Positions 18,000 through 41,230 are shown, counted from the first letter of the stretch. The stretch is 64,000 bases of DNA from Bugula neritina (GCA_964035545.1 OZ037773.1:6167751-6231750), one strand, 5' to 3'. A program made the numbers and translations. The notes: a model not told the origin generated them from the sequence alone.

Positions 18000-20800
18000 A
18001 GTATTATAGCATATAGTGTATAGAGTAGAGAATATAAAGTACAGTATACTACATAATCATTAGTATAGTATGTATATACCTTAAGATAAGCCTAAGGCGT
18101 ATAGATATACTATACTTCATATACTATACTAGTTCATTTTCAGTTTGATTTTCATGACTTAAATTAATCACTAAAGCTAGAACGAGAGTGATTAGACTTT
18201 AGGCAGCATGAATATGAGCATCTCTATAAAATTTAGAACACACTAGCTTGACAAAGTTAAAAGACAGGTAGTTGACATGAGCCACATTTTGACCTCACTG
18301 ATACTCTAGGTCTAAGCACTATTATACGCTAAAGAAAAAGAGGTAGCCAGAAGAAAATCAAAATTATTAGTATTAATTAGTCACTATTACTACGCTTATG
18401 ACATCACTATGACTATGGTTGATGAGCATCAGAAACTAAGCAATTCAAAGTGTTAGTGTAAGTGTTGGCTATTAAACTTGGTACTAACTTAAACTACTAA
18501 GAAAACATCGATGACTAACTCTAAAACTTCGACTAAGCGTAAGATTTACAGTTGGACTTTGAGTTAACGTTGAACTATTCACTAAACTTCAGTCTTAAAC
18601 TAACCTAATTTAATCATTTGCCAAACCGTAGTTCTAATTTTAATTTGGGTCATTTGACTATTTAGTACACATCTGCAAATTGTGACCAAAAATTGATGTT
18701 TGCTTAAAATAATTGAAAATTTACTAAATGGGGTAATTTTATGTGCTGATTCTAACTATGCATAGCGAAAGAAAAATGGGAGGAGGTCCTGCAACATTAG
18801 AGCGCAACATCATTGTCATATGAGCTGAATAAATATCTGCAAACCGTAATAAAAAACCATCACAGTCTGCACGTCTCAATTTAATAACAATTAAAATTCT
18901 TAGTCTGAAACATAGAAAAATCAAGTAAAATTTTAAAAACCTTAATTATTTAATTGTTTTTGTTAATATTTTATTAGTTTAGGGCAAAAGAAAACATATA
19001 AATTAGCAGCTAAATTGTGAAAAATAGCTAAAAACCAGTTATCTGGAGTGCATACTAAATGAAATGAAATGACCCATTTACTGATTTCGTGAGACCAAAA
19101 GTGGATGCTTATTAATATAATAAACAGAAAATTAAAACTTTGATTTAATATTTACTTTTAATTTTATAGTGTTTAATACTTATATAATATATTTATGCTT
19201 CTATTAGCTTATACTTATAGTAAAGTTATACTAATAGTAATACTAATACTAATAGTTAGATTTTTGATTTTACAATTACTCATAGTCATAATTATTAGTT
19301 ATTATTCATATCGTAATTATTAAATTAAAACTAACATTACAGTTGTAGTATTAGTTATACCAAGTTCAATACTTTACTCACATCGATTTACTTTTACTTT
19401 AATACTTACACTTAGTCTTACAGTTACTTACACTTAGTCTTACAACTATATTATAACTCATAAGTATAACTATAAGTAATAGTATAACTAAAACTTTAAG
19501 TTAAAGTCAAACTATTTTAATTTACTTATCTTAAACTTAAAGAGTAAAAGGCTATAGTTATTGTCAAACTTAATGACCTATCACTATCACTATGAGTATG
19601 AGACCAATATGAATCTTAATCTAAAACTAAAAACAGTTTTAGTTTTACTAAAACTTAAAACTTAAAAGTAAAAGTTAAAAGTAAATCTGGCTTGTAGTTG
19701 TTTAGACTTTAGTTTTTAACTATTACCGGAATAAAAATCACATCAGATCACATTGAAATTGAGTTTTCTAAGAGTTAAAAACATCGGGCGGCGGCGTCAC
19801 CCCTAGAATACATAGGAGTGCAACTTTTTTTACCTTAATTTGAATTACTGTTGTACTAGGAAAAAAGATGCTTTGATGTGTATTTAATTATTGGTGGCCA
19901 AGTCATTTAGGCTCAAATGTATTATTAGCACAATGCAATTTAGTCAATGTATTTTTTAATGTAGGTTTTGTATAGATGGTTTACTTTCGGACTAGCGTAA
20001 ATGTCAAGGCTCAATAAGCTCTTTAGCTTGGAATCATTCAATCGAGATTGAAAAGATGGCAGCCTCCTTCGATTATACAAAAGTCGACCTGTATAATATT
20101 TTAGGAATACAGATTGACGCAACCGCTAAAGACGTGAGTTTATCTGCATTTCACTTTATAATAATAAGTTGTCTATAACTATAATTATTTTCATTAAACA
20201 TCATGTGACTAGTAGAGGCTTAAAGACTCGTTACTTTAACTGAGAGTAATACTAACATGAATAACAACTAACAAGTAACACTAAATTACTAAAACTGAAA
20301 GTGAAGAACAAGATGAAGATGAAGATAAAGTTAAACATAATCATAATGATAATGATATTGATAATGATGAAGACCCTCTTCATCTTGATGAGTTTGGGTT
20401 TCACTACTCAGTAGGTGTAGATCTAGTGAGTAGTCACTATCGGTGGTGAAACTTGACAAATTAAAATAGTAATGCAAATTAAAAATATAAATTAATCTAA
20501 TCTAATGCGAACTGAAGCAGTGACACCAATGGGCTATGAGCAATGACTAATCACTAATCAGTAATAACCAAATCTAATGTGTTGATTTACTTGAAGTTGA
20601 TGAGATAGCAAATTAAAATCTACAAATAGTAATACCAAAGGCAACTGTTGTGATTTTGATAATTATAGTAATACTAATAATATAATAATAATAATACTAT
20701 ATTAGTAATACTATTACTAATAATCATAATGAAATACTAATAGTAATAGTAGTAATTATAATGATTCTCGTTCTCATTCTGTGTCGATAATTATAACGTA
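18000..20800. promoter_or_regulatory. Head-to-head promoter region of RRBP1-like/DNAJC17 with 6-bp-periodic ACT/AGT tracts
   Basis: Divergent ATGs at 17401(-) and 20056(+); tracts such as AGT ATA ACT ATA AGT AAT AGT ATA ACT AAA ACT TTA AGT TAA AGT CAA ACT (~19463-19513). Confidence 0.55.
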
Positions 20801-23800
20801 CGTCAAAGCTGACGGCCGATTCAAGTTGTAGACTATTTATTGTAAAAAGAGAATGCTTTTAATATTAATACTCTTACAGTTAGTGTTATTTCTGCAGGTA
20901 ATAAAAGCCTACAGAAAAAAGGCTCTAAAGTATCACCCGGATAAAAATAAGGACCCAGGAGCTGTAGAAATATTCCACCAGCTTTCAAAGGCTTTAGAAG
21001 TTCTGACAGATGAAGCGGCCAGGGTAAGTGCAGTTGAAGTCCGGCACTGCATGCTTGTTGTTTAAACAACAAAAACTAAATGGTGGAATATTCTAATAAG
21101 AAACCTTAGTGATGAAGAGTTTCAAGTTTTACAGTTTTGTTCTATCCTCGTTACCACCATACTATTCACGGAGAGGACAAGTCATAAGCTTACTATAAGC
21201 TTTTTTACACTGGCTACAGTTAGATCTGCTCACTTGAATTGTTCAACTACTTGGAAATGCATGCTACTACAGCTAAAGGGTGGTGTTTCTGATGAAGTAA
21301 ACTTATGGTATTGAACTGTGACTAAGATATAGATATTGTCTTTAAGTTATAATACACGAGCCTGATTCTGCAATGTAGTATAACACTATGTACATATATG
21401 TTTAAAGTAATATATAATAACCAATAGGCAGTGTTTTACACTATATACAGATATGTATTAAGTTATATATAATAACCTACAGGCAGCTTATGACAAGATA
21501 TTAAAGGCACGAGCAGCTGCCCAGTTGAGACACAAACAGCTGGATGCTAAGCGACAGAAGCTTAAAGAAGGTTTGTCCATTCATTGAGTCACAGAACAGA
21601 GTTTTTTACCTGCCTTCGTCTTACGTTACCCTTTTCTATTCTGCTTATAGGTTTTCAGTTACTTCTTAGTTCAATCAGACTCTCATTTTTTTATCTTTTT
21701 TTTCATGGCATTCTATTCTTGACTCAACTCTTCTAAAATAGGCTGACTCTAATTTGTAGTATTTTGTAATGGCAACTAGTTATTAGATATACTAACAAGT
21801 GTTACAAATCATTCTTTAATTCTTTTTGTTGGTATTTTTTAAAATTGATTGCAAAATTCTAAACTTGGCTGCAGCTGGTTGCTTTGTTGCAGGAGTTATC
21901 TTCTTGTTTTTTGTTCTGACACAAAGGAATGCAAGTGGAATTATTCTCCATGCTCTGTTGTGCTGTAGGCTGGCATGTTACTTATCAGAGCTTTATGAAA
22001 CAATTTTATCTTCACATCTTTTCTCGTATTCAAATAAAAGTTTAGCCGAACTCTTTATGTTTTTTATGTTTAGTTTTCATGTTTAATTGTTATGTACAGC
22101 AGATACAACTTTTATTCGCCTGTGAACTTCTTGTAGTTTAGTTATAAATATATGTAAAAGTGAGTTTAATAACCATCTTGTTACAAATATGAACCTAATA
22201 AGAACCACATTGTAGACTTAGAAGCAAGAGAGCAAGCTGGTGTGTCCGAGAAGCAGAAGAATGTTCAACAGGCTAGAAATTTGCAGGCAGAAGTAGAGAG
22301 ATTAAGAAAAGAGGGGAACAAGCTCCTAGAGAGAGAGCAGGCATTGCTGAGAGAAGAGTTGGCTAAAGAACAAAGGCTATATTCTGCAGGTGTTGATAGG
22401 TAAGTTCTTAGACTGTGGTCTTTTGATTTTATGGGCAATTTGCCTAATGACAAGTCATCAGATTTTGTGTTGTTCAGTGATGTATAATGTATTGTAGGTA
22501 AATGTCACGTGTAAAATTAATAGAGCAATATATTACTAATAATTTCATATATAATAATAAATATACTCCTCAGATTATATCTTGTGAGAGTTTTGCAAAA
22601 ATCTGCTGTAGGCTGAACAATGGTGGTGACTCCATAAGGATCAAACTGAAATGGAAATGTTCTAAAACTGACACTACTAATGGGGGCTACACTGAAGATG
22701 TTATCAAGTCTGTATTTTCTAAAGTAAGTGTTAATATTTCCTACTATCTCATGCTGGGACCATTAACATGAGAGAAAGTAGGATTTTATGTTTATATCAA
22801 TGTGTGTAGTTATACCTTTTCTTCTAATAGTATGTAGCTGCTCTGATGGTGTAAACTTAATATCTATGAATATTATAGTAGTAAACAAATATTATAAGTA
22901 AATAAATACAAATACTATAGTAAGTATACAAATACTATAAGTAAATAAATACAAATACTATAGTAAGTATACAAATGTATCACTTAATTCAAGCATACAC
23001 ATTTGTAAATAAGTGGTGTATTTGTTTGTGTTTTAAAGATATATAACTTATTTTTCTATTTATAAAATTGAAGTTTCTATTATTATACAATACAAAATAA
23101 TATATCGACAGAATTGAAATTCATGTTATTTATTGCTATTTACAGTATGGGGGTGTCTCTATTATACTTATCAGCTCTAAAAGAAATGGATCTGCTATTC
23201 TAGAGTTTGATAATCTCCATGCGCAGGTAAAGTGTTCACGGGTCCTACTATTAATAATAATTAACAATTGAATTTAATTTTGTTGCATAACATAGGGTTA
23301 TCATCTAAAATATTACTATTTAGAGGGGTTGGTATACTAGTTGCGAATTATCGTATGAGGATATCTGGCTAATATTTTTGACCTTTCACAGTGATTAAAT
23401 TATTGGCTCTATCCTCAGCTGTTGCTTTTTATTAACGGAGGAGATAACTCTATGACTCTCACCATGTTCCCCGTAATATACCACATAATTCAACACAGGC
23501 ACCACGCACCACTAGGATATTTCGGATTACTTAGAAAGCGTCAGCTAGTGTACTTGGTGTGTAGCTGTGTATGTGTCATAGACAGCTGATGTATTGCAAT
23601 TCTTATATTCAGTTCATCTTTAGGCGGATTCGTTAGAAAGTGAGTCTGGCCTGTCAACATGTCCGTTAATCGTTTCCTGGCTGAGTGGAAAACCTTTGCA
23701 ATCCAACTCCGAAACACCAATTAGTACATCTCTAACATCACCTCATGAGAATGTAAGAGTTTTAACTTTTGTAAATTTACTAAATATTCAAATTTAATAA

Positions 23801-25548
23801 TTTAAATAATTATTTGAAAAAATTAATTCAATAAGTTATTAATCATATGGCAAACTTTTATCAAGAGCTGTGGGAGGATTTACTCTCTCGGAGATGTGCA
23901 AATTTTGTAATTTTAAAAATCTCATTCTTTTGTGAAAATGTGAACTTTTTTAATTGTTTTAGTTTCGTGCATCTTTTAACTCGCTGGTTTTAATGGTTTG
24001 GCATATGCTTTGCTTCAGTGTACTAATTGTGTAGGGGATAAATAGCACTATATGATCATTTATTATACAATACATGATGTTCTATACATTTTGTGAGTAG
24101 AAATTATGCCAACTGACATTTTTAAAGTAGTGCAAAAGCAAATATAATACATACTTTGAATAATTCTATTTATGAAAAAGGCAATAATATAATAATAATA
24201 TATATAATAATGAAAAGTAATAATATTTTTATTTTTATTATTAATTTCTGATAATATCGTAAAACGAAATATAATAGCACTACAAAGCCAGTAGGCCACT
24301 GATAACACATTCTTTTATAATCATGAAGCCACAAATGAGAGGGCATTAACATTTGCCCCCCCCCCCCCCTTAATTTCTGCTAAATTAGTCTTTTGCCATT
24401 GGCACACTTGATACTACAGGAGAGAGGCTTTCTATTCCTTCAATTTCTCTTTCTTTGGCCACGGCTTTGGCATTGGCTCAGTGATATATTTAACATCTGT
24501 ACTTCTTTCCGAATGCTTACGGAAAAACTGCAACAACAATATATAATTTGGAATTTTTCAGGCTAATAATTTATTTTTTATGCTAGACGACTAAACAAAA
24601 CTTTCATAGGCCCTGTTATATTTGGCACTAATTCTACAATTCCTAGTAATATCCCAGGTGCTTTATATTGCAAGATATTCTCTTTTTTTATTGGTATCAA
24701 AACATTTCAACATTTTTCTGTCTTTGACAAAACTTTAATGCATGTGGCGTTTTTTTTTTGTAGTTTTGCTTAAAGTACAATTTTCTTGATGCTATTTTTA
24801 AAGGCGTTTGTTCTCTTAATCCTGATTAGTAGAATGTCCTGTTGGCTTTTAAATTTCGACATGATTTAGATGCAGTTGTTGTGTGGCCATTACATTCTGT
24901 GCAGGCAATGTTTGCATTGTCGTTGCCTAATGACTACTTTTTTTAACAAAGCTGAGTCATGAATCCCAGTTGGTTTCATCTGTAACCTTAATTATAGAAG
25001 CAGAAAAAATTAATCATAATTTTACTGGTTCCACATTTAAACATAATTGTTTAAACTATTGCAGCTCAGGCTACTCTAAAAACACCAAATTGACATCATG
25101 TGTTGAAATTAGCTGTATATTTTAGAAGTTATTCTGCATCCCCTGTCTAATTTAATTGCTCTAAATTTCTACAATTGTATGAAATTGCAATATATACTCT
25201 CATAACATTTAAAAGAACCTTCAAATCACATTATTCCTGTAATATTTATTTTGCTAGTTTTTTAGTTGTGCTCTCAATATTTTTGAGTATTTTCAAACTT
25301 TTACATTAACAATCAGTTACCTGCTGAAATGTAATCTTATTACATTTTTTTAAATTTTTGCAGTTGGTTGAAACGTTTTATTTATTTGTATTTTACAGGA
25401 AGCTTACAAAAATACCGTGGACTACTCTACAGATGCTGATTTTGAGGACTTTGTGTTAAATAAGTTAGCGAAAGCCGAAACCAGTAAACAAATAGTTGAG
25501 CCTTTGCCGGATGAACTCTATGATAATCAGGAAATTCCCAGCGGGTAG
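20056..25548 (+). CDS. DNAJC17: DnaJ homolog subfamily C member 17 (J domain + coiled coil + RRM)
   Basis: Exons 20056-20133, 20898-21023, 21483-21570, 22216-22399, 22612-22723, 23146-23226, 23624-23752, 25399-25548 join in frame: [98 protein letters not shown]. Confidence 0.93.
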
Positions 25549-25717
25549 CAGCTAACACCCCCTGGATTTAGTACAGATCTGTTTTATGATTGCAGTCTAA
25601 ATTGTGAAACACTGTCTATCCAATTAGTGTAATGTGGCCGCTTTTTCAAAATGGCTGAACATGGCTCAATCAAAATACGTCTTCTGAAGCCTAACCCTGT
25701 CAGAAGAATTTCTCTAT

Positions 25718-25790
25718 AAGCAGCTCCCAGTTGGGGGTGACTAAGTGTAGTTAGTTTGGAGTTGGGGTTAAAATTTCCAACCTAGACATC
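25718..25790. repeat. Fragment related to the palindromic element at 38349-38494, in the predicted DNAJC17 3'UTR
   Basis: AGCAGCTCCCAGTTGGGGGTGACTAAGTG matches the reverse complement of 38466-38494 (AGCAGCTCCGAGTTGGAGGTGACTGAGTG) with 3 mismatches. Confidence 0.6.
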
Positions 25791-27044
25791 CAGTCAAGCT
25801 GCGACTCATTTTGTTACTAACTATGAGAGTCTCTTCTAACCTTGACCCTGCCAACAACTCATTTTAAAACAGGTCACAGCGTTTAGGTGTTTTTATATCA
25901 CTTTTGTTAGAAATTGGTTCAATCTTTTAGCATCTCTTGTTTGTTAACACGCTGTATATGGTTTTCTATTCATTTCTTTTAGTAAATAAAACTAATTCTG
26001 AGAACTAACGTTTGTTTTTCTGTGTATCTTCATGTATTTCACAGGACAGTATGTCTATACTAATGTTCTAACCCTTTATAAGGGAAGTAGTTTTTTGCTA
26101 ATATTTTCTTGGTAATGTGTCGACATGTTATCTCTTTTTTATCATTTGAACTTTTGACTGGTGAAAAGGAGCATGTTGGTGCATTAGCAGAAAATTGACA
26201 AAAGTAGCCTTGTAGGTAAACCAGGAGCCACATTCTTTGACTTTCTCTATACCTGCTTATAAGAAACCTTCTGAGGTTATTTTAGGCACAGTGGTAATAA
26301 AAAAGTCTGTGAATAATAGTGATAATAAGACATTGGAAAATAACAGTTCAAATATTATTTTAAAATTGGCAATTTAGGAATAGACACTTCAGAAAATGGC
26401 TATTTTCAATATCGTGATATGAATTTAACTATTAAAATCTTCAACAATCGAAAATATTACTTATTTGTTAGCAACTGGATCATATTTTTTTTAATTTTTA
26501 ATGCTGTTTATTTTAGTTGCTCTATTTTTATTCAGTAATTACTGTATAACTGCTAAAAACAAATTATCAAGTAGTTACTACAAAAAACTTGTTGGTAGCT
26601 TAAATGACAATCAAATTGCTACATCATCTGTAAAATCAATTAAATTAAAGACTTGTAAAAAAATTCATCTCACATTTCACGTTATCAATAAAACTTTCTG
26701 TTTTTGTAGCGGATCAATTTTGAAATGCTCATTTTCAAATTGGAACTTTTGATTAGCGGCGGATTCACAATAAGTTGTGCATCTTTTTGGAACCAATGAA
26801 TGAATATTGTTGAAGCTGCTGCTACCATTATTGCCGTCACATGTATACTTCGATTAGCAGAAGTTAACATAAATATGATAAATTTTTATCAAATAGCATT
26901 CTAGCTTAAACTTGGATTGATCACAGTGGTACCACGTATAGGGTCAAAGAAATCTGTCCTTAGATTTATATTTCTGCAAAATAATAAAGATCTTCTAGAT
27001 GTAGCTGAACAATAATTCTGTACCCAAAGGTAAAATAGCAAAAC

Positions 27045-27206
27045 CACATAATATACCCACATGATATATACCCACATAATATATACCCACATAATTTTTA
27101 CGTAATATATACCCACATAATATATACACACATAATATACCCACATGATATATACCCACATAATATATACCCACATATTATATACCCACGTAATATATAC
27201 CCACAT
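27045..27206. repeat. ~17-bp minisatellite (ATATATACCCACATAAT)n
   Basis: About 10 imperfect copies. Confidence 0.9.
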
Positions 27207-28946
27207 ACTCTAACTGATTTGAACCAATATTGACTAAGTATTTATAGCCTTGTGTTGCACTAAATCTGAGCCACTTTTACACAATTTTTTGAAACTTATA
27301 TAAGCATTAGTTTTAACCAATCAAAAGGTTTAAATGATTTTAAAACTTACATAATTAGCAGAGGTTTTATGGTTTTTCAATTTCATGTCAGCGATGCTTG
27401 CACCATTACTCATAATAATAGGAAGTAGGTAATAAAAAACTTTCCTTCAACGATATCAGCTGCCGAAGAACATTTTGAGAGCACGCTTCATTTGCCTGAC
27501 GATAATGGGAGGAAGAGCTATATTTAGCTAGACTGCAGTTGACCTTCTTCATGGTCACAGCTACTGCCCCCTGACAGTTCCTATATACTAGTTTGGTATA
27601 TAACTAATAGTTTGGTTTACCAAGAATTTTGAAATTATACATTCAGCGCCAGCATGGCGCCTAAATGCCTTGCAAATATTATTTGCAACTTGTTATACAA
27701 TCAAATTTAATGCCAATTGACGCTATACAACCCTAGCATCTTTGGCATGTCTGGCCATATCGGAAATTGCTAGACCTGAATCATAGATGCAACACCAGGT
27801 GATGGGGGTCAAGGTCCAGTGCCATGATGTAAAAAGTTGTTGGAACTGGTTTTTTACCTAATTACTATAATGCAGCAAGTTTTGTTTTAGACAAAGTACT
27901 TTTGGAGTCTTTACCAATTTGTTCCCATAAATTTAATAAGAAGTAAAATTTTTATGAGATTGTAAACTAACCCAGAACTACTGATTGTTCACTTTAAAAG
28001 CTTTTTAAATGAATATTGTACTTTTAGTTGTGATTTTAGCCATGTAAAGAGACATATTTTACAGCTGTATTCCTACGACCTTTTCATTATTATTAGTAAC
28101 GTTACCATGAATATATGTTTTAGTTCACAGTGTTTCCCTAAATCACACTAAATCTAAATTCCCGTTTATACCTAAAGAAGCAAGTATGGATGCATGCGCC
28201 TTAAATAATCATAAATAAAAAATTACATTAATATCATAAACCAAACACATTCAAGTTGCAGGTAAACATTGTGAGCAACCTTATACATTACATTTATAAC
28301 TCATTATTAGATAATAATGAAAGTCCTCAACTTGGGGTAATTTAAGAAAAATTTATTTGCTGTTGTCCCACAACCAAAACTTGCTGCAGATTACAGTTTA
28401 TCTGTTAAAATTTTGTTGTAACGTATAGAGTATAAACCCATCCATAAAAGCAATGAAGTCTTATAATTGAATGAAATGATGATTTTGTAATAATAATAAT
28501 AATGATAATAATAAATATATAAATTGCTAAATATAGTAAGCAACCTGTCACAAAAATAATGTAAAACTCATTTATTCTGTAACAGAAGTATATTACTAAA
28601 TAATTGGATGTCAAAAAGATTTTAAAATGGAAGATTATAGGCTGCTCTAACTCAACAGTCTGCATAACAAACAACCACTAGAAAACAGCAAAAACTCTTG
28701 CAGGTGCTTTAATCCTAAACGTAATTTATTGAATTGTTTTTAATTAAAACAATAAATCAATTATTTCTAATTAAAATTTTGAAGTTGCCTGCTACCAATT
28801 AAAACTTATTTAAGTCATTTAGCTATAAAAGATATAAACCAACCCAAAACAATTTTACAAGTTTGTAGTTTTTTCAAATAGCGCTAAATATTTGTGGCCA
28901 TCAAACTCAATTAAAAGCTTAAACATTTATGCTGCATAGTACTATC

Positions 28947-29459
28947 ATTATAAATATATAATAATTATAATATTGTCATAAGAAATATCAATTATTGTTG
29001 ATACGGTTTAAATGATCAACTATAAAAAGTTTCTATAAATGATAATATAAATAATTCCTATTTCTTGGTTTTTTATACAGAAATGGTTGTTTTCCAGATG
29101 TTGTATGTATTTGGGAACATTGTCTTAACCATTTTTTGTTTAAGCTAGAGGACAACATGAGTTACAAAAAGAGCTAAAAATACTATTTCTTAGAAATCAA
29201 AGGTTTATCTTGTGTACTTTTTATTATGTGCACCATTTCCTTCAATTAACTGAAATATCACTTCCTGGACTTGCTTTGCAATTCAAACTTGTGATACTTT
29301 TAATCAATATATAAACATATCTGTTTATATATTTAACAAATACAATAATTTATACAAATACAATACAATGAGCCTACCATGATAGATAATAGCTAATAGC
29401 TAATAGTGGATATTGCTGTATCTATAATGCTTTTTACAGAAGTCTGTTAGAAATCTTAG
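28947..29459 (+). repeat. ~0.5-kb direct repeat, copy 1 (upstream of the TGF-beta-like gene)
   Basis: Colinear with 31836-32354 (offset ~2890), with long identical stretches, e.g. ATAATTCCTATTTCTTGGTTTTTTATACAGAAATGGTTGT. Confidence 0.9.
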
Positions 29460-30362
29460 ATACAAACTACTGAAATTGCTAATTAGTGTAGCACAAAAGA
29501 TGTATATATTATGAAATTTAAGCATAAGTCAAAATTCAGGCCAAGCGCAGAAACCTGCCTTAAGATAGTTGTCAACAAACTGTATTTATTTTGGAGTTTG
29601 TTTTAGGCTGAAGTGCGTTTCCCGTGTTTAGAATTTTAAGTGAACAAAATTTCTCAGACGAAAAAAAAGTTTCTCTTTTTTACATGCAGTCCTTCAAAAT
29701 GTTTGGCATGTATAAAGATGGCATTTTTAAATGCAAAGCTGCAAATAATTCAAACATTCATTTACCAATAAGCGCTCAGTCACAACTCACACATTGTATC
29801 AGTTAATTCCTTGCTTGTAATGTTATTTAAGGCGCATGCTTTATATTAATACCTAGTGCATGTGTTTAGCTTGAAAATAAAAATACAGTTGTACAAGTGC
29901 ATCTGCCAAGTATATCTCCTTAATATAATAACCACATGCAAGAGGGAGCAAAGGTGTTGATATTGGCTGCAGCAAAATGCAACTGAAACAAGCTAAAACA
30001 TTCATTGTTTTTCATAGAATGTACTTGTGGTATAGAACTACTAGCATTGTTTAGGCTATGTCTTTTAATGTTATAAATATGATGCATTGGTATTTAATAA
30101 GCGTTTTCATAAAGACATCATCAATATTCTGCATAAAACATACGATTATTTTCCACATTTTCTACTGTTGCTTCTTTGATAATATTTTCTTGCTGCTATC
30201 TAAACACTAACCTGGACATGCACAATTTTCATGCTTTAAGATATTTTACATATTTGGTTACACAACAACATCTTTTTGTATATCTGGAACCTTGTTTTCC
30301 ATTCTGGCAATGCTGCCAATTTAGTATACATGCACTTCGAACACTTTTTACAAAATGAAAAG

Positions 30363-30370
30363 TATATAAG
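30363..30370 (+). promoter_or_regulatory. Candidate TATA box of the TGF-beta-like gene
   Basis: TATATAAG 58 nt upstream of the ATG at 30421. Confidence 0.45.
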
Positions 30371-30420
30371 AAAGAGATAGGGACTCTCTTTTTATACATT
30401 GGTCAGCCTGTTTAGTCACC

Positions 30421-30872
30421 ATGTCTGTTTACATGTTTCTAATTGTCTTTATCGTTATGGGTGATCAAATCACTGCCTGCTTGCCAACACCAACGGCAGC
30501 GAAGGCAGCAAGAGCGAAAACATCACCGGCATTGAAAGCATCACCGACATTGAAAGCCTCGTCAAAAGACTATTTGGCTTCACTGGAGTCTATTCCACAC
30601 GAGGAAACAAGAACCAGGTATGACTCTATAGTTAAATTAGCTGTTGAGGTTTTTGTTTCCAGATAATATGTTATTCTATCATAGTTGCAACTTTGAGGAA
30701 TGTTTTGTTTAAATGTACTTTTAGCTTACAACAGATCTATTACACTTTATGTAACTAAGAATGCAATTATCAGAAAGAAGTTCAAACTTGTGTGTATAAA
30801 ATACACATAACCACCTGCATACGCACACACAAACAGACACAAACACCCACATGCACACACACACACACATAA

Positions 30873-30903
<31 letters not shown>

Positions 30904-30961
30904 AACACCCACACACAAACACACACACACACGCACACAAACAGACACAAACACCCACACA

Positions 30962-31004
<43 letters not shown>

Positions 31005-31763
31005 ACATGCACACGCACACGCACACACACACACACACACAGGCACACAGGCACAAATGCCAGACATTTTCACCAGTTTCATTTATTGCATTTTGTTTTG
31101 TAGAGAACCGAGGAAAAATCCTTTTACTGGCTTTGACTATTGTGAAGAAGGGCAGACGTCATGCTGCCTCCACCCATTTGTTAAAAGGGCCTCAGAACTT
31201 GAGCTACCCTATGTTTTTCCTCAAATCATACCTCTCAACCACTGCCAAGGGCACTGTAAGTTCATGCAACATAAAGATGTTCTGTTTATAAAATTACAAA
31301 GTGTTACTGCATGTGACTAATATAACTCATTGCATAAATCCTACTTATATATTTTCTATCATATTCAGCTGCACGTCTGACTGATGTGCTAGCTCGTGAT
31401 TCTGTACAAAAGTCTGAAATCAAACCTCAGGCTTCTAACTAGCAAATCAGCTTGCTAACCACTGCTCTACTTAGGGTCTACTGTGGAATCTAAAAGCTAC
31501 AGTCTGTTTACTATTATATATTAAATTTTCTGAGAAATTTTTTGTTGAACTGTTTCTAAAAACAATGCCCGGCATTATTAGATGTTATGTGTTTAATAGG
31601 CCGCTTAGAAGGCAGCGTTCATTCTCAGCTGCTGAGCAAGGACTCCTCCTGCTGCCACGCCACAGAGTTTGAGCCAATCATGGTTACGTATTACGACGGC
31701 AACGGTGTACTGCAATCAGAGTGGCTGGATGGAGCTGTCGCAACCAAATGTGCATGTTCATAA
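30421..31763 (+). CDS. Divergent TGF-beta superfamily ligand, 170 aa, minimal prodomain
   Basis: Exons 30421-30617, 31104-31255, 31600-31763 (phases 2, 1) give signal peptide + ~50-aa pro region + REPR site + KNPFTGFDYCEEGQTSCCLHPFVKRASELELPYVFPQIIPLNHCQGHCRLEGSVHSQLLSKDSSCCHATEFEPIMVTYYDGNGVLQSEWLDGAVATKCACS*; 9-Cys pattern C..CC..CxGxC..CC..CxC. Confidence 0.88.
30815..31055. repeat. (CA)n compound microsatellite in intron 1 of the TGF-beta-like gene
   Basis: cacacacaca runs. Confidence 0.95.
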
Positions 31764-31835
31764 GTAGTCCTTGGTAAAATGAGGGTGGTTGCGGACAATA
31801 TTTTTTATTATATAATTATAATTATATCTAAATAA

Positions 31836-32354
31836 TTATAAATATATAATAATTATAATATTATCATAAGAAATATCAATTATTGTTTATATATTGCTTA
31901 AATGATCAAATATAAAAAGTTCCTATAAATGATAATATAAATAATTCCTATTTCTTGGTTTTTTATACAGAAATGGTTGTCTTTCAGATGTTGTATTTAT
32001 TTGGGAACATTGTCTTAACCATTTTTTGTTTAAGCTAAAGGACAGTATGAGTAACAAAAGGAGCTAAAAATACTATTTCTTAGAAATCAAAGGTTTATCT
32101 TGTGTACTTTTTTATTGACAAACGGATGTGCGTATCATTTCCTTTAATTACCTGCAATATTGCTACTTGGAATTGCTTTGCTGCTAGTATATTTTTAGTC
32201 AACACATAAACATATCTGCTTGTATATTTAACAAATACAATAATTTATACAAATACAATACAATGAGCCTACTATGATAGATAATATAGCTAATAGCTAA
32301 TAGTTGATATGGCTGTATCTAATGGTTTTTACAGAAGTCTGCTAGAAATCTTAG
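31836..32354 (+). repeat. ~0.5-kb direct repeat, copy 2 (immediately 3' of the TGF-beta-like gene)
   Basis: Homologous to 28947-29459; begins about 70 nt after the stop codon. Confidence 0.9.
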
Positions 32355-32660
32355 CTCAGGCATTCTACTGGCAATATTCTTAGGCATGTACTATACCCAC
32401 ATTTATGATGCTGTTATGGTAAAATCAACATACCTATATAATTTCCATAATACAGTCTTTGCATCAGCCACCTCATTGGCTGAACATCTTTATATAATAC
32501 ATATAAAGTCTCCACAATTAAAAGCAATAATTTTTTTCTGATTTGTTGCACCAGCTTGACTTCAACACTAAGAAAGTTATTCTTATAAAATAATTACATT
32601 TATTAACATAGCATTTATTGCAGCACAAAACAACTGAATAGATTACACTAAAATAGCTGC

Positions 32661-35600
32661 CTAATGCTGCCTGTCACCATGTTTGTGGTGATGTTTGCCA
32701 TGCTTTTCCTGTTTTTGCTGCTGTTCAACCAGGTGTTCCCACGCCTTTACTTTCACTTCAGCGTCTTTCATTTTATTTCTCAGCTAAAAATAGAGCTTCA
32801 ATAAGAAATGTGATAGAAGATAACTTCCTATTAATATTTTGCTGATTTTACTTGGGGAAACTATTGTTACAGTATACAATGTTGCACAAACATGTACATG
32901 ATATGGTACGGTGCTTTATTCCATAAAATTCTTAAACCGCTTAATTCTTAAACAGTAATTTTTTTTATAATATTACTATTTATTATTATTATTTATTATT
33001 TATAATTATTTTTTACGAGAGTTTTACGTCAAAAGAAGTATTCAGAGAGTAATAACACCGCATGCAGACAGTCACAATTATGCTTCCATAGCATTTTCCA
33101 GTGGCTCTATTCTGAAACCCTTTCTCTTAATAAACTCAACAGGCACACAACTACAAACCACTTTGTAACCTTAAATATACTTACCATATCGTAGGCAGCA
33201 TGAAACAATTGCTTCTGTTCCTTGCCATCTTTCCCATTTGGTTTAGAAGTGTGGAGCTTCTTCCTAATCTCTTTATATTTCTCACGGATGTTCTTCATTA
33301 TTTTTCTGATTGGAGTTCCAGTTGGCCTTCTGCCAAAAATATCCTCCAGGTGTTTCCTGAAACCCTCCACATGTGGGCCATAGGCTGAGCTGCAAATGTA
33401 TATATGTATATTATGTATACATGTATATTATGTGTATTATGTATATTATGTATACTATGTATATTATGTATACTATGTATATTATGTATATTATGTATAC
33501 TATGTATATTATGTATATTATGTATACTATGTATATTATGTATACTACATGTATATTATGTATATTATGTATATTATGTATATTATGTATACTATGTATA
33601 TTATGTATACTATGTATATTATGTATATTATGTATACTATGTATATTATGTATATTATGTATATTATGTATACTATGTATATTATGTATATTATGTATAT
33701 TATGTATACTATGTATATTATGTATACTACATGTATATTATGTATGTTATGTATACATGTATACTATGTATACTATGTATATTTTAACATATGCAAGTCT
33801 AAACAAATTAATTGCTCTATAATCATCAGTGTTCTCAACACAAGTAGGAAGTTATATATATTAAGGAACAAAGGCTAGTCGCTATAACGTACCCAGCAAT
33901 TTTATTTTCAATTTCCTGTTTCTTCACTTGGTGTTCTAGATCATCAAGTTGTGACGTCACGTCCTGAGCATGTTTCTTTAGCTACATATATTATATTACA
34001 ATTTAATATGGTAAAATGTTGCAGTATTATTTCTAACATTATAATATAAAATTTATGCAACATACAATTACATAGACACTATGTTGAAACAATTATTGTT
34101 TCTGCAAGCAGTGATGGTACCAAAAAAGCATTTTACTAATTTTAACCTAACAAATGCCCTTCTTGATACTAATATTCCAATATCAAACATAACAATGGTA
34201 GCATAACTCCAGTCAATTGATATATAATATATATCAAGTGTGGTACAGGTAGCGCTAGTAAGCAATTAATTTAGAAATATTTTGTTGAGGGAGAAAACAT
34301 ATAAAGCATATACCTTAATACAGATATCAATGTCAAATTGTTGTCTATAATGATATATTGAACATAATATGCTTATTTTCAACATACAATAAATCAATCT
34401 GTATTTATCTGTTGATGGCATTATTTTAGGAAATTTATTCAGGCTGTAAATCTAACTATTGGGCCACAACGTTGCAATTAGGAATTGCCCCCCCCACACT
34501 GATTAATTGAAGACATGTGTAAACAAAATGTAATATAAACCTGAATGGGCATATATAAATCTGAAGGTGCATTTGCATGAGTGGTAGCCAAGATATTTCA
34601 GCTGCAGCTAATAATACTACACAAATGTAACTAAGTAGCCCTGCTATAAAAAACGGTACTAGCACTTCACACACTAGAGTTGTCAACCTCTTTAACCTCA
34701 AAGATACCTGTTTATAAGCTTCCTTGTATTTATGTCCATGTGTAGATGACTTCAATTCTTCCTTTACTTCTTCATATTTCTGTCTGATCATGTGTCTGTA
34801 TCCGTCAAAGTCTGGTCTACCAGTTGGTCTGTGGGCCAGCAGGTCCTCAAAATGATCTCTAAACATCTTAACATGATCTCTGCAATAAACACCATCAAAG
34901 ATGTCTTTAACAATTAAAAATTTGATAAAGTTCAGCAGCTTTACTGGCTGAAAAATACAAATATATACGTTTCAATTCAATACCTAACTTTATTTGGTTA
35001 AATATAAAATATTTTATCACCAAATAAGAGTCCTTGACTTTTAATAGAGTTGATGTATTTAAACGCAGATAATGAAGCCATATTTAATGTACAAATACAG
35101 TACACTACAAGATTATTTATTAAATTGGCTATTAGTCAGTCGAAAATTATGAAAAACATAAAAACATCTGTACAGGACTGGTTCTGAACATTTTAGGCCA
35201 GCTACTAAAGATCTCTGCATCAACTCCAGTTTTTCAAATCAATAAAATATTTTCACTCTACAAACATTTGAAAATGACAATCGAAGTTATTCTGTGAATG
35301 CAAACACGGAAATTGACACCCGCTTTCATGCTTTAGCTGCAAGTACTTATCTATGCTGTAGAAGATTAGTCAATGTCTTACACAACAGCTTCTGTCTCAT
35401 CAGCATTGCTGCCGGCAGCAGTTAGCTTAGCATCCTGGGACAGTTTCTCAGCCCATTTTCTTAGAGCAGTTTGAGCTTTTCTGAAGTTTGAGTGCAACTA
35501 AAAAGTACCCAGTTATATAACATAACTTGCATGAGTGAGCAAAACATATATTCCATCACTTACTATATGGAAATAAACCTGCAGGATATGTGATTTTCTC

Positions 35601-36805
35601 CATAATAAGTTATTAAATATTAGTTTCTGCATCACCTATACATCGTCTTATAAAGAGTATTTGGTTTTTAGAGCTCATAGTTGTGCTCTGAGATCTAACA
35701 GAGTTGAGAGCAATACATGTTCGTTATGATAGGCAAGATACAAATAGTTAGTTCTTATAGCCCCCAGCTGCTGGTTTCAGGTTTGAGAGGTATAAAACAA
35801 ATTACCATAGCAACAATGTTGCTACTCTGTTCATCTATCCTAGCCAGCAATATATACTTGGAATTATCCCCCTCTACTAGGTGCAGCATTGCTTCACTTA
35901 GTACTTACCGCCCAGACAGCGTGGTTGTGATCAGCCCGGTCCTTGTGACTAACGGCCAGGCCACCTGGTCTCAGACTAGCCAAAGTCTTTGATGTCTGTC
36001 TGTAGAGGTTGTGTACTTGTTTATAGATATCCTTGGGTCTACCAGTTGGCCTGGACTGCATCAGTGATTGGAACTTAGATGCAAAGTCCAGAGCATGCTG
36101 ATGGTATGGACTAGCAACAGAAATAATACATGCATAACGAGACAGGAAAAGTGTTAGTATTTTATGTAACTCAAAAGATGCAGTCCTCCATGTATGCAGA
36201 GCTTTAAAAATAAAAACTTTGTGTTTAATAAATGATACTTAATGACCTTCCAACATTAATGTTTTTATATCTTTACCCTACCATTAGTGGTTCTATATTT
36301 TTTTTATTTCCATAATTGTTTGGATGTCTTAGTGGTTTGATATTTTCCTATATTCTCTATTGTTGCTTTAGTAATGCTGTTAAAATTTAAAATTCAATGT
36401 CAGATAACGTGCCCACTGTCCCATTACCTTAGGATTTCACCAGTCTGTAGTTTGTACAAAATTTGAACAGTTTAACCTGGTTAAACAATGTTCAATGAAG
36501 TGCATTTTGGGTAAGCATAAGACTGATACTCCAAAGCAAGCACAACACTTCATCACACCAGTGTTTACTTCAAGCACTCACCTTCTAAGAACAGCCGTTT
36601 TATCTGTATCCACGTCTGCAGCAATTGCCTACAACCAATGATATTTGGCTAAAATATGTGACAGTACAGAAACTTTCATTGGTGCAAAAGAACGTATGCT
36701 TATTACACTAAAATGATAACAGTTGTTGATTGGCTAGCATCACTCAGGAAGGAGAAATGTACTCACCACAGCTACAAACAGACAGAAAAACGTAGCGAAA
36801 TTCAT
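32661..36805 (-). CDS. Uncharacterised secreted protein, 330 aa, three ~95-100-aa helical repeats with an RPTG(R/T)P motif and a His-rich tail
   Basis: 8 exons (36767-36805, 36582-36628, 35909-36110, 35382-35497, 34708-34879, 33893-33981, 33185-33389, 32661-32783), all GT-AG, total 993 nt, open frame; signal peptide MNFATFFCLFVAVAIA. Confidence 0.82.
33397..33782. repeat. 9-bp minisatellite (TATATTATG/TATACTATG)n
   Basis: About 42 copies abutting the acceptor of exon 33185-33389. Confidence 0.95.
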
Positions 36806-38068: not shown

Positions 38069-41000
38069 CTATGCTTTTTCCACAAGATCTTTACTGGAGA
38101 AGTCCTGTTTCCACACAAATTCCGCAGCATAGCCCTCGATTTCACAAGACTTCTCACAAGTGTATACTAGCAGTGTACCCCAGTCTAAGCCGTCTTTCAC
38201 ATCGGTCATGTGGAGATAACTCAAAGTCTGACTCATGATCTACAAGATCGTACATCCATAAAGACTGTTTGCAACTGGAGTGTTTTCAATATGATTTGAA
38301 GTTTCAACACAGGTGATAATTGTACAAGCTTCTATACTGTCATGAATCGCTCTGCGTCGAGGGTGACTAAGTGCAACAGTTTGGAATTCTCGAGTTTGGG
38401 GGGGGGAGGGGGAGAAATTCCAACTTAAACCCCTCAACTCAAAACTAGAGAATCCCAAACTATTGCACTCAGTCACCTCCAACTCGGAGCTGCTTTTAGA
38501 ACAATTTTATTGCCATATTATGATTATGTAACATGTATAAACAGCATTAGTTCATGAAAAAAACACAGCAATGGCATCAAAATGACACAATCTATAAAAC
38601 AGACACTCCATGATGCAATTCTACAACTTAGACATACGCAGAGGAAGTACCTGAAACTCGAACTGCCGAGCTGCACCACATGACTCACAGTTTGGTATAC
38701 TCTCGGGAACTGCGCTGTCATCAGATACCAGCAGCGGTCTACCACCTCTGTTATACCTTATTATCTACAATAAGGTCAAGGATGTATACACATGTTGCTC
38801 GGCAACAGCAACTAGAGTATTCAGAGTATAACTACTAACTAGAATTTATAGAAATAGTATATTATTCAAGTTCTCTATTAATCGCATAAAAATTAACTCA
38901 ACTTTCAAACTTTACTCTCTTTGCAACAAAATCACTTTAGAATAAATGTCTTCAAATATGTACAATAGTTGTGTAAACTACTTTGGGAATGAAATGTGGA
39001 TTTTAATATATTTTACACTACATTGTATTCATCGAGAGCTTCAATAAGCAATGTGATATTTCCAGATTCATGCTGCAACAATAATGAACCGTCTAACATA
39101 ACTAACTTGGGATTTTCCAACAAACCTGGTATCCCCCAGCATACCTGATAATTCTAGCAAACCTGTATTTCTCCAACATACCTGGTCTGGATTATCGGCA
39201 ATCCTTTCTCTAAACTTCATAAAAGCTCTGTCAGCAATTTTAATTTCTTCAGCTGCATCCCAGTCTGATTTAGTTGCTTGGGCAGACAACTCCTTGCCAG
39301 GTTTATTATTTCTGATGTAACTCTAAGAGCGTAAAGAACAGGGTGACGTGATTGGCTAACTTGTCACCTTTTAATATACTATTTTAGACAAACAGTCAAC
39401 ATGCTTACAGATAGCACAACTTATTCAAATATAGTATTGCATCAACTGTTCGTATGTAATAACATATATACTTCAATAAAAACATAGGTTATTATTAACC
39501 ACAATGAACTATAATTTAGATCTTCAGTATAAATTAATTCTTCGTGCAAACATCGGCTTTACTTATAGCTAGTAAACAGGATAAAAGGCAGTGTCTGAAT
39601 ACAGTTACTAATCTTAAGCATAACTTTACACATTTATGTGTTTCAGAATCAATCATAGACCCTAAAGGTTATGGTTAAACCTAGCTTTTGTAGATTTATA
39701 AGAAATTGAACATAGACCTCTAATAAACGCGCAGCAGAACTTTTTCACTGCTCAGAATAGAATTTGCTGAGCCGATTAACTATTGATAACAACACTTACC
39801 TCAAACTCTTGGAGTGTCTCTTTCTCTGACTTACTTCTAGGCTTTGAAATCGTTTCAGCTTCCACCACAATTTCATATTCATCAAAAAAATAATTCAGTT
39901 TCGTTTTTTTATAACTTTTCTCACCTACAAATTTATAAAGGGAATATTGCAATACAACCTGTCACATGTTACTCTCAGTAATGATGGCTATCATGAAAAG
40001 ATAATGTAAAACTAAAAAACTCATTAAAAAATTGTAAAAAACCTAAAAATCATGTTCAAGAAATGTATTTAAACAAGGCTTGTGTGTATTTTCAAGAGGT
40101 CAGTGTCAATAAATTACCAATGTGAAGATTAAAACAAAACAAAAAGTTATACCTATTGCATAAAGAAACTTATTCAACTTACCAATTTCTACTGGATTCA
40201 TTGCTGATGCAGAATCGCTGACCAAATTTTGTGAGTCAGCGCATTCAATTTTATGATGAGCTTTCCAGTGAAGCACTTGATGCTCTTTGCAGCAATACGT
40301 GTACCTTTTACACCGAGAGCAAGACTTTGTTGCTGAACAGTGACATACATGGCAGAGTTTGCAGTAATCCGAAGCTTGGGGATATGGCTGTGATTCGTCA
40401 AAAAAGTGTTCATTTGGTGGGTTGAAACTGTAAACAGAATTTTTTCGTGGCAGTTGGCTTCTAAAGCATTTAATAGAAGGCTTGGTACAACTCTCATTTT
40501 CACACACGAATATAAACAAAGTCCGGTGATAAGTTTGTGAGTTGTCGGTGTCAATCAAATTAACGTTACTGTTAGGCTTGTCATTATGAGAATGATTCAG
40601 AATTGGTAGCCTAATTTGCGAGTTTGATGGCGATAAAGAAAATTCGACATCAGTCTGAGTCTTCGTTTGAGGCTCTCTTTTATTCTGGCTTTCAGTAAAA
40701 TTTTCAGCCTTAGTCTGCTTGGTCACTTTTTGAGTACAAGGTCCAATTTCATCTCCAGTTCCGTTTGGCTTTAGACTTGCAGTTTCAGTTTGAGTCTGAG
40801 TCTCTATCTCAGACGATGGAAACGTAGATCCATGAACAGTCTCAAAATTCGATAGTGAATATCCAGGACGACCTTTAAGGTCACCAAGTGCAACTCCACC
40901 GTCAGTATCAGTATGGGTATTATTGTTATTAGATTTAGTAGTAGTACTACTACTAGTAGTAGTACGAGGCTCCGACGGCGACAGTGAGTGTGACACTGAC

Positions 41001-41230
41001 TGGGAGTGAGTTTCACTTTCAGCTTCGCCTGCCCCTGGTGAATAAATCTGCATAAGAAACTTGCACACTCTTGAACATTGGCAACATTTTAAGTTTTCAT
41101 AGCTTGGTATATGTTTCAACTGTAACCAGGCAGGAGATCCGCCTAGTTTAGAAGGAAAATAATGACTTAACAGTCTCCAGCTATCGTCACACTCTTCAGC
41201 AAAACCGAGATCCACACATGCTGAAGCCAT
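38069..41230 (-). CDS. PDCD2: Programmed cell death protein 2 (uS5 chaperone; zf-MYND + PDCD2_C)
   Basis: VDLGFAEE..FPSKLGGSPAWL..FLMQIYSP..YHRTLFIFVC..FRSQLPRKN; MYND CHVC..CSRC..YCCKEHQVLHWK..HKIEC; C-terminal LDWGTLLVYTC..EFVWKQD; exons 40183-41230, 39801-39924, 39182-39322, ~38651-38763, 38069-38239. Confidence 0.95.
38349..38494. mobile_element. Palindromic MITE-like element in a PDCD2 intron
   Basis: ~49-bp imperfect inverted arms (38349-38397 vs 38442-38490); related fragment at 25718. Confidence 0.6.

Follow-up and report, generated by a model that had tools for sequence, protein, structure and literature searches.

In the TGF-beta superfamily, a large prodomain is thought to be required by the ligand for its folding and dimerisation, for latency and for targeting to the matrix, and type I receptors are recruited by the wrist of the mature domain together with a pair of tryptophans (Trp) in its finger 1. 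The canonical prodomain comprises some hundreds of residues, e.g., amino acids (aa) 30–374 in the activin of Echinococcus (PMC7225322). Short precursors have a precedent in SmInAct of Schistosoma mansoni, cloned by RACE, the rapid amplification of cDNA ends, as a 161-aa precursor with the motif RQRR at position 32 and a 126-aa mature domain harboring nine cysteines (Cys); this ligand is needed for embryo development (PMC1847691). The subject of the present analysis is a gene for another short-precursor ligand, located at positions 30421–31763 (plus strand) of a 64,000-nucleotide (nt) stretch of Bugula neritina DNA (GCA_964035545.1 OZ037773.1:6167751-6231750), referred to below at its full length as the window. 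Overall, it is quite probable that this is a selectively maintained gene of the Bugula neritina group, possessing its own promoter and three exons and encoding a short-precursor ligand without a canonical prodomain exon.

The joined reading frame comprises 513 nt (exons of 197, 152 and 164 nt) and encodes 170 aa. When the frame and the GT..AG introns were recomputed, the exons proposed in the first-pass annotation (30421–30617, 31104–31255 and 31600–31763) were recovered with exactly the same coordinates. Four other copies served for comparison: the B. neritina contig VXIV02003003.1 (L002), collinear with window positions 20480–36593 over about 16 kilobases (kb) at 70–90% DNA identity, and three contigs from B. 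neritina-associated metagenomes of the Joint Genome Institute (JGI; L001, L003 and L004). The collinearity with L002 places the source of the window among the bryozoans of the B. neritina complex. The gene is composed of the following parts:

30421..30617, plus strand: coding part of exon 1, with the signal-like N-terminus (approximately aa 1–19, ending ...ITA/C), Cys20, the pro-region and the conserved DYLASLESIPHEETRT
30618..31103, plus strand: intron 1, GT..AG, phase 2, its acceptor kept in L001–L004
31104..31255, plus strand: exon 2, with the rest of RTREPR, the mature N-terminus, Cys 1–4, finger 1 and CQGH
31256..31599, plus strand: intron 2, GTAAGT..AG, phase 1, within the last Cys codon of CxGxC
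31600..31763, plus strand: exon 3, with the 16-aa wrist, CC, finger 2, the CAC-S end and the TAA stop at 31761–31763

Both introns are bordered by GT..AG and carry a pyrimidine tract at the 3' end (CAG/GTATGA...TTTTGTAG/A in intron 1 and CACT/GTAAGT...TTTAATAG/G in intron 2). Exon 1 ends with the first two bases of the Arg66 codon, the candidate convertase site RTREPR being completed in exon 2 at 31104–31113, and the codon for the final Cys of CxGxC is split after its first base, with which exon 2 ends. The CAG/GTATGA donor of intron 1 is kept in L002–L004 and both splice sites of intron 2 in five of five copies (the window and L001–L004), so that every splice site present on a contig is intact. 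The frame, all Cys and RTREPR are likewise kept in the four other copies, which represent at least two further divergent lineages. Given a structure kept in four other copies of related lineages, the gene is real and not a chance assembly of signals.

The B. neritina orthologue (KAF6021565.1/KAF6021568.1, EB796_020126/EB796_020123) is annotated as a “hypothetical protein” of 154 aa, and as UniRef100_A0A7J7J6B2 it bears the name “TGF-beta family profile domain-containing protein”. It shares the three exons and 83% protein identity over 157 aligned residues, along with the Cys pattern, RTREPR, the short wrist and the missing Trp pair; it differs in a pro-region shorter by 10 aa and a mature N-terminus shorter by 2 aa. 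Its annotated start is the second Met, though the frame is open from MSIYMFLIV. The orthologue was modelled by AUGUSTUS with transcriptome hints (PMC7576161), which is not proof of expression. Thus, the earlier remark that the open reading frame (ORF) track does not assemble the gene has to be set against an AUGUSTUS model of B. neritina with the same three exons. The gene is therefore already in public annotation, unnamed and undescribed.

The substitution pattern carries the case for a functional gene further. The exon indels between the window and L002 measure 3, 36, 3 and 6 nt, all multiples of three, and the introns and flanks of the same pair carry indels of many lengths. Over the 157 codons compared between the window and the orthologue, there are 31.3 nonsynonymous differences at 363 sites and 24.7 synonymous differences at 108 sites (odds ratio of Nd/N to Sd/S 0.31, Fisher p = 1.3e-4), with the pairwise ratio of nonsynonymous to synonymous rates (dN/dS) ranging from 0.23 to 0.57. 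The gene is under purifying selection, as these counts show. Constraint differs between the parts: the fastest-evolving is exon 2 (80.9% DNA identity to L001, 16 amino-acid changes in 50 codons, dN/dS about 0.5), compared with 86.3% identity to L001 in intron 2 and 92.5% in exon 3 (dN/dS 0.23). The divergence of exon 2 beyond that of the introns would suit a duplicate of a canonical TGF-beta/activin gene that has fallen silent or is in decay, i.e., a functionless relic, as would the duplicated flanks on either side of the gene, the absence of a canonical poly(A) signal and the fact that the gene is known from DNA alone. Such a relic is, nevertheless, highly improbable: the frame, the nine Cys, the cleavage motif and the available splice sites are kept in all five copies, these copies differ by 7–16% in intron 2 yet their exon indels are all in-frame, and nonsynonymous change is significantly slower than synonymous change.

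The assignment to the superfamily was made with the Pfam family TGF_beta (PF00019, gathering cut-off 27 bits), for which the orthologue (P0012 in the searches) and the exon pieces stood in for the spliced window protein. The orthologue reached 41.8 bits (E 2e-10) over profile positions 2–104 of 104, so the check by hidden Markov model suggested in the first-pass annotation came out well above the cut-off over the full profile. Exon 3 alone scored 26.9 bits (E 9e-6, profile positions 65–104), and exons 1 and 2 taken singly had no match in Pfam. Compared with solved structures, the orthologue was closest to GDF8/GDF11 (E ~3e-5 to 5e-5), then to BMP10, activin A and TGF-beta2; exon 3 alone matched BMP10, activin A and TGF-beta2 chains weakly. 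In the ESM Atlas clusters, exon 3 fell within TGF_beta at 0.95, and exon 2 was nearest to “Artemin” at a weak 0.77; the Atlas model of P0012, with a predicted local distance difference test (pLDDT) score of 0.64, matched TGF_beta clusters at a template modelling (TM) score of 0.81. The better of two AlphaFold models displayed the finger-2 hairpin and, with low confidence, a six-residue helix in the wrist. The top 50 PDB entries retrieved by Foldseek with this low-confidence model were nearly all TGF-beta-superfamily ligands, one artemin/RET complex being among them, and these matches were weak (E ~5e-3, TM 0.35). The profile match of the orthologue is the decisive result and marks the gene as one for a genuine TGF-beta-superfamily ligand.

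Ligands of the GDNF family (neurturin, artemin and persephin), which belong to the superfamily as distant members, have short pro-regions and no finger-1 Trp pair. They differ in their Cys number (seven), in the wrist and in their receptors (RET/GFRalpha), and membership of the Bugula protein in this family was rejected, since it has nine Cys against seven and matched neurturin only at E 0.097 over residues 66–108, a part of finger 1.

The ten Cys of the product occupy residues 20, 79, 86, 87, 113, 117, 134, 135, 167 and 169; the first belongs to the pro-region and the other nine to the mature domain, where they take positions 10, 17, 18, 44, 48, 65, 66, 98 and 100 of 101 aa. The motif C-x6-CC at the mature N-terminus gives the nine-Cys pattern of the TGF-beta/activin/myostatin subgroup. 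The cystine-knot motifs CQGHC, CC and CAC-S are present, align with the Cys of myostatin and are kept in all copies, and the CC-x31-CxC spacing is the same as in myostatin. By spacing, the first Cys of the CC pair is presumably the counterpart of Cys77 of TGF-beta2.

The two departures from the canonical mature domain concern the wrist and finger 1. The wrist between CQGHC and CC reads RLEGSVHSQLLSKDSS and comprises 16 aa vs. 25 in myostatin, the HMMER alignment of the orthologue with myostatin placing nine gap positions there as deletions of 3, 4 and 2 residues. These deletions flank the segment LEGSVHAQLLN, which aligns to the myostatin helix; hence the wrist appears to be shortened mainly in its loops, and a short helix is probably retained, as judged from this alignment. 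The “truncated wrist helix” of the first-pass annotation is thus right as to the length of only 16 aa, but the deletions fall in the loops before and after the helix, and “shortened wrist region” fits better. The reported loss of the finger-1 tryptophans was borne out: GWDWIIAP of myostatin lies opposite KLPYIFPP in the orthologue alignment, and the mature part has a single Trp, located in finger 2. Neither the canonical Trp pair (GW-x-x-W) nor a full-length wrist is therefore found in this ligand.

With the structurally characterized myostatin/GDF11, activin A and TGF-beta2 (3hh2, 5e4g, 1nys, 1tfg), the Bugula ligand shares the Pfam domain, nine Cys, CxGxC, CxCS and an RxxR site ahead of the mature part; it differs from them in that they possess the Trp pair and a wrist longer by at least 9 residues, and the similarity reaches only E 3e-5 to 5e-4. 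A shortened heel/wrist is shared with mmTGF-beta2-7M (PDB 5tx6, 5ty4, 5tx4), which is among both the sequence and the fold matches. This protein is, however, man-made, its whole helix (52–71) being deleted and its interchain Cys removed, whereas the Bugula ligand keeps the interchain Cys and about 16 wrist residues. The engineered protein retains type II receptor binding (PMC11845725).

These departures would fit an alternative function, the decoy of the first-pass annotation, in which the ligand would bind type II receptors (or ligands or co-receptors) without recruiting type I receptors and would act as a secreted antagonist or decoy resembling inhibin, Lefty or the engineered mini-monomer of TGF-beta2. 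Such a role would agree with the absence of both finger-1 Trp, with a wrist 9 residues shorter than that of myostatin and with the fast evolution of finger 1 and of the N-terminus, a pace that one would expect of a modulator. It would also agree with the behavior of engineered TGF-beta2 lacking residues 52–71, which retains TGFBR2 binding (title of PDB 5tx6) and is cited as a dominant negative (reference 34 in PMC11845725). At the same time, the engineered monomer carries C77S (title of PDB 5tx4), but the Bugula protein keeps its interchain Cys, and its wrist retains a short helix by alignment. The argument for a decoy starts from two features only, the loss of the finger-1 Trp and the reduced wrist, and at 25–30% identity the type II receptor-binding surfaces are beyond judgement. 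Two further comparisons are of relevance here: Lefty has no interchain Cys, unlike the Bugula protein, and AMH lacks the GWxxW motif yet signals via type I receptors, which counts against the decoy. By this analogy, the loss of the Trp pair alone would not be proof of lost type I binding. A decoy is accordingly considered unlikely.

Finger 1 itself occurs in two forms. Its tip (31195–31230) reads ELELPYVFPQII in the window and L004 and ELKLPYIFPPAI in L001–L003, the two being six clustered substitutions apart, most of which change the amino acid. JGI sample 3300002729 contains both of them, as does sequencing run X2, and they may represent alleles, paralogues or mixed lineages. The copy L004 has the window form of finger 1 and is otherwise like the other B. 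neritina copies. Run X1 (31050–32000) contained the window haplotype and a second one, their differences in exon 3 (31649, 31676 and 31691) being synonymous. Runs X2 and X3, which bear the same organism label, contain DNA diverged by 5–15%, as fits a cryptic species complex.

The precursor part is short throughout. The N-terminus of the product is strongly hydrophobic (MSVYMFLIVFIVMG, with 9-residue Kyte–Doolittle means of 2.4–3.4 within residues 1–14) and is conserved in L002 as MS(V/I)YMFLIVFIVMGDQITACLPTP. After Cys20 follows a low-complexity, Ala/Lys/Ser/Pro-rich pro-region of about 47 aa and then DYLASLESIPHEETRTREPR; the length between the signal-like segment and RTREPR is about 47 aa in the window vs. 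37 aa in B. neritina. REPR occupies residues 66–69 and is followed by 101 aa, the precursors of the Bugula copies ranging from 158 to 170 aa. No match to TGFb_propeptide/LAP (PF00688), nor to any Pfam family other than TGF_beta at E <= 1, was found with the exon pieces and the orthologue, in agreement with the very short pro-region described in the first-pass annotation. The canonical large prodomain of pro-TGF-beta/BMP/activin precursors is thus absent from the predicted product. The lone Cys described just after the signal-like segment (Cys20) is indeed present and is kept wherever a copy includes exon 1, four times in all; since these copies are close relatives, its conservation says little.

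“Almost no prodomain” is a true description of the gene, though one with a precedent in the 161-aa precursor of SmInAct (PMC1847691): the short precursor is a variant of a known ligand type and is not unprecedented. Both ligands are lophotrochozoan, of the TGF-beta/activin type, with nine Cys and a short precursor. The best match of exon 3 outside Bugula was RTG88991.1, the SmInAct counterpart in Schistosoma bovis (E 1e-4, 41% identity over 39 aa, with the same ...C-A-C-S end). On the S. bovis contig QMKO01001535.1 (L005, 5806/6831), this gene is interrupted by a phase-1 intron that follows CxGxC at a distance of two codons. Intron 2 of the Bugula gene, also of phase 1, lies inside the last CxGxC Cys codon, i.e., two codons from the S. 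bovis intron position. The SmInAct-type ligands differ in that the mature-domain identity is only 29%, the mature domain is 126 aa long vs. 101, and they retain GWDNWIIHP and a 37-aa wrist between CxGxC and CC. Orthology of the Bugula gene to the SmInAct-type ligands, as judged from these sequences, is unproven. In the RTG88991.1 model (366 aa), the mature-domain exons of two tandem copies are joined into one protein. Short precursors seem to exist elsewhere as well, to judge from an ESM Atlas cluster of nematode TGF_beta proteins with a length of 213 aa.

A precursor may also appear short when the gene model is incomplete, upstream exons encoding a normal prodomain and the “signal peptide” being an internal hydrophobic stretch. 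The 5' end is known from DNA alone, and an AG at 30414–15, just before the ATG and conserved in B. neritina, could serve as an acceptor without a stop codon intervening. The DNA upstream of the ATG, however, carries two motifs that bear on this question:

30316..30320, plus strand: CCAAT box-like motif, within the block CATTCTGGCAATGCTGCCAAT, which is the same in the window and L002 (function inferred)
30363..30369, plus strand: TATA box TATATAA, 52 nt before the ATG, within AAAAGTATATAAGA, which is the same in the window and L002

The CCAAT block lies about 45 nt upstream of the TATA block and about 100 nt before the ATG, and the flanks of the two blocks are only ~76% identical between the window and L002, in contrast to the fully identical 14-nt context of the TATA box. 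These conserved blocks define a predicted TATA/CCAAT promoter directly 5' of the gene. The TAA at 30367–30369, which forms the end of TATATAA, closes the frame 17 codons ahead of the ATG, leaving it open from 30370. The best upstream acceptor (a pyrimidine tract followed by CAG at 30404–06, with its AG at 30405–06) is stronger than the AG mentioned above and reads TTG in B. neritina, i.e., it is lost there. The upstream 4.6 kb holds only short AT-rich open frames, none of at least 45 codons with protein-like sequence; AUGUSTUS with transcript hints gave no upstream exon, and the next gene upstream in B. neritina is a DnaJ gene. Finally, the hydrophobic signal-like segment right at the ATG fits a first coding exon. 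Because of the in-frame stop, the conserved TATA and CCAAT blocks, the lost acceptor, the signal-like start and the barren upstream DNA, a hidden prodomain exon is regarded as very unlikely.

So far, the gene is known from a narrow group of organisms. A HMMER search with exon 3 against 1.84 billion representative sequences retrieved one close relative (P0001, 58 aa, 91% identity), whose 90% cluster includes KAF6021565.1 and KAF6021568.1, and one plausible distant relative (P0011). Nine repeat proteins from the same search (P0002–P0010) were rejected as spurious, their matches consisting of many short stretches. A word search with exon 2 (a 169-aa stop-free piece) found nothing, and one with P0001 found two Bugula exon-3 ORFs only. 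The word search with P0012 was also empty, because its 90% cluster is represented by the 58-aa fragment, which falls outside the length window. Metagenome scans with exon 1 and with the exon 3 alignment yielded no relative in a collection that evidently lacks even the contig of L001. Outside Bugula, two very large protein searches gave no relative except the weak SmInAct-type match in Schistosoma. The gene hence appears restricted to the Bugula neritina group, and the “lineage-specific” of the first-pass annotation holds as far as the databases searched reach. No papers mentioning the orthologue accessions were found, and literature searches on an absent or unusually short prodomain returned nothing relevant.

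A mechanism can be outlined for the preferred reading, that of a selectively maintained short-precursor ligand. The hydrophobic N-terminus would act as a signal peptide and direct secretion, and a convertase of the furin type would cut after RTREPR, freeing the low-complexity pro-region of 37–47 aa. The mature peptide of about 100 aa would fold as a cystine knot and form a disulfide-linked dimer via the retained interchain Cys, the first of the CC pair. Because the wrist loops are shortened and the finger-1 Trp pair is replaced, the type I receptor surface would be remodelled, and receptor usage is probably atypical. Most likely, the product would be secreted in a non-latent form and serve as a ligand over short distances within the colony. 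Bryozoans are reported to have gained and lost numerous BMP pathway genes in a lineage-specific manner, with acvr1 absent (PMC13121700), which would make unusual ligand–receptor pairings unsurprising.

Several points weigh against this reading. The gene is known from DNA and predicted models alone, the runs X1–X3 being DNA without spliced joints, and no full-length product from transcript assemblies was found in the protein collections searched. Neither AATAAA nor ATTAAA occurs within 540 nt 3' of the stop codon. The signal peptide call is based on visual inspection and hydropathy only, and the Pro at P2 of REPR makes it a minimal, non-optimal furin site. The two AlphaFold models, for which the alignment had eight rows, were of poor quality (pLDDT 35 and 47). 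Since the comparison sequences are all close relatives, the conservation of single residues carries little weight. Canonical members of the family need a large prodomain to fold and dimerise, and efficient folding of the Bugula ligand is for this reason an assumption.

A bolder reading, which we regard as unlikely, is that of a natural “mini-TGF-beta”, which would fold and dimerise with no prodomain as chaperone, lack a working type I epitope, act in Bugula as a non-latent antagonist or through a non-canonical receptor, and exist in two selected forms of the finger-1 tip. If selection does act on the two forms, it might relate, e.g., to colony recognition, larval settlement or symbiont control.

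The surroundings of the gene have features of their own, among them a pair of direct repeats:

28944..29460, plus strand: upstream copy of a direct repeat of about 0.5 kb, 93–95% identical to the downstream copy
31832..32350, plus strand: downstream copy of the direct repeat, beginning about 70 nt past the stop codon

The repeats bracket the gene at a spacing of approximately 2890 bp, and the B. neritina contig appears to hold the downstream copy only. A former tandem duplication of the gene unit could have left them behind. In the draft B. neritina assembly, a unit of about 12.8 kb including the TGF-beta gene is tandemly repeated (L002 4122–8912 and 16914–21438), which gives rise to the identical proteins EB796_020123 and EB796_020126 on VXIV02003003.1 and may reflect either a genuine duplication or a haplotig that was not collapsed; in the window the gene is present once, tblastn of its 64 kb having found no second copy or paralogue. 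Intron 1 of the window contains an imperfect CA microsatellite of about 250 nt (approximately 30800–31045), to which no part of the B. neritina copies can be aligned, and the length of intron 1 in these copies differs from that in the window. An Rfam scan gave no match. Further downstream, at 40106–41230 on the minus strand, lies a neighbour with a PDCD2-like N-terminus, a MYND finger (zf-MYND, 27 bits) and a long Ser/Thr/Asn-rich insert.

The value of the finding is limited in that it concerns one species group and a gene known from sequence alone and already in public annotation, and that the SmInAct precedent has been published. Still, the gene adds to the view of a reshaped BMP/TGF-beta toolkit in bryozoans (PMC13121700). 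The Bugula ligand would represent, in nature, what the engineered mini-monomer antagonists are in the laboratory. As a conserved natural ligand without the prodomain, the full wrist and the Trp pair, it would also allow the true need for a prodomain and a wrist to be studied in a minimal system.

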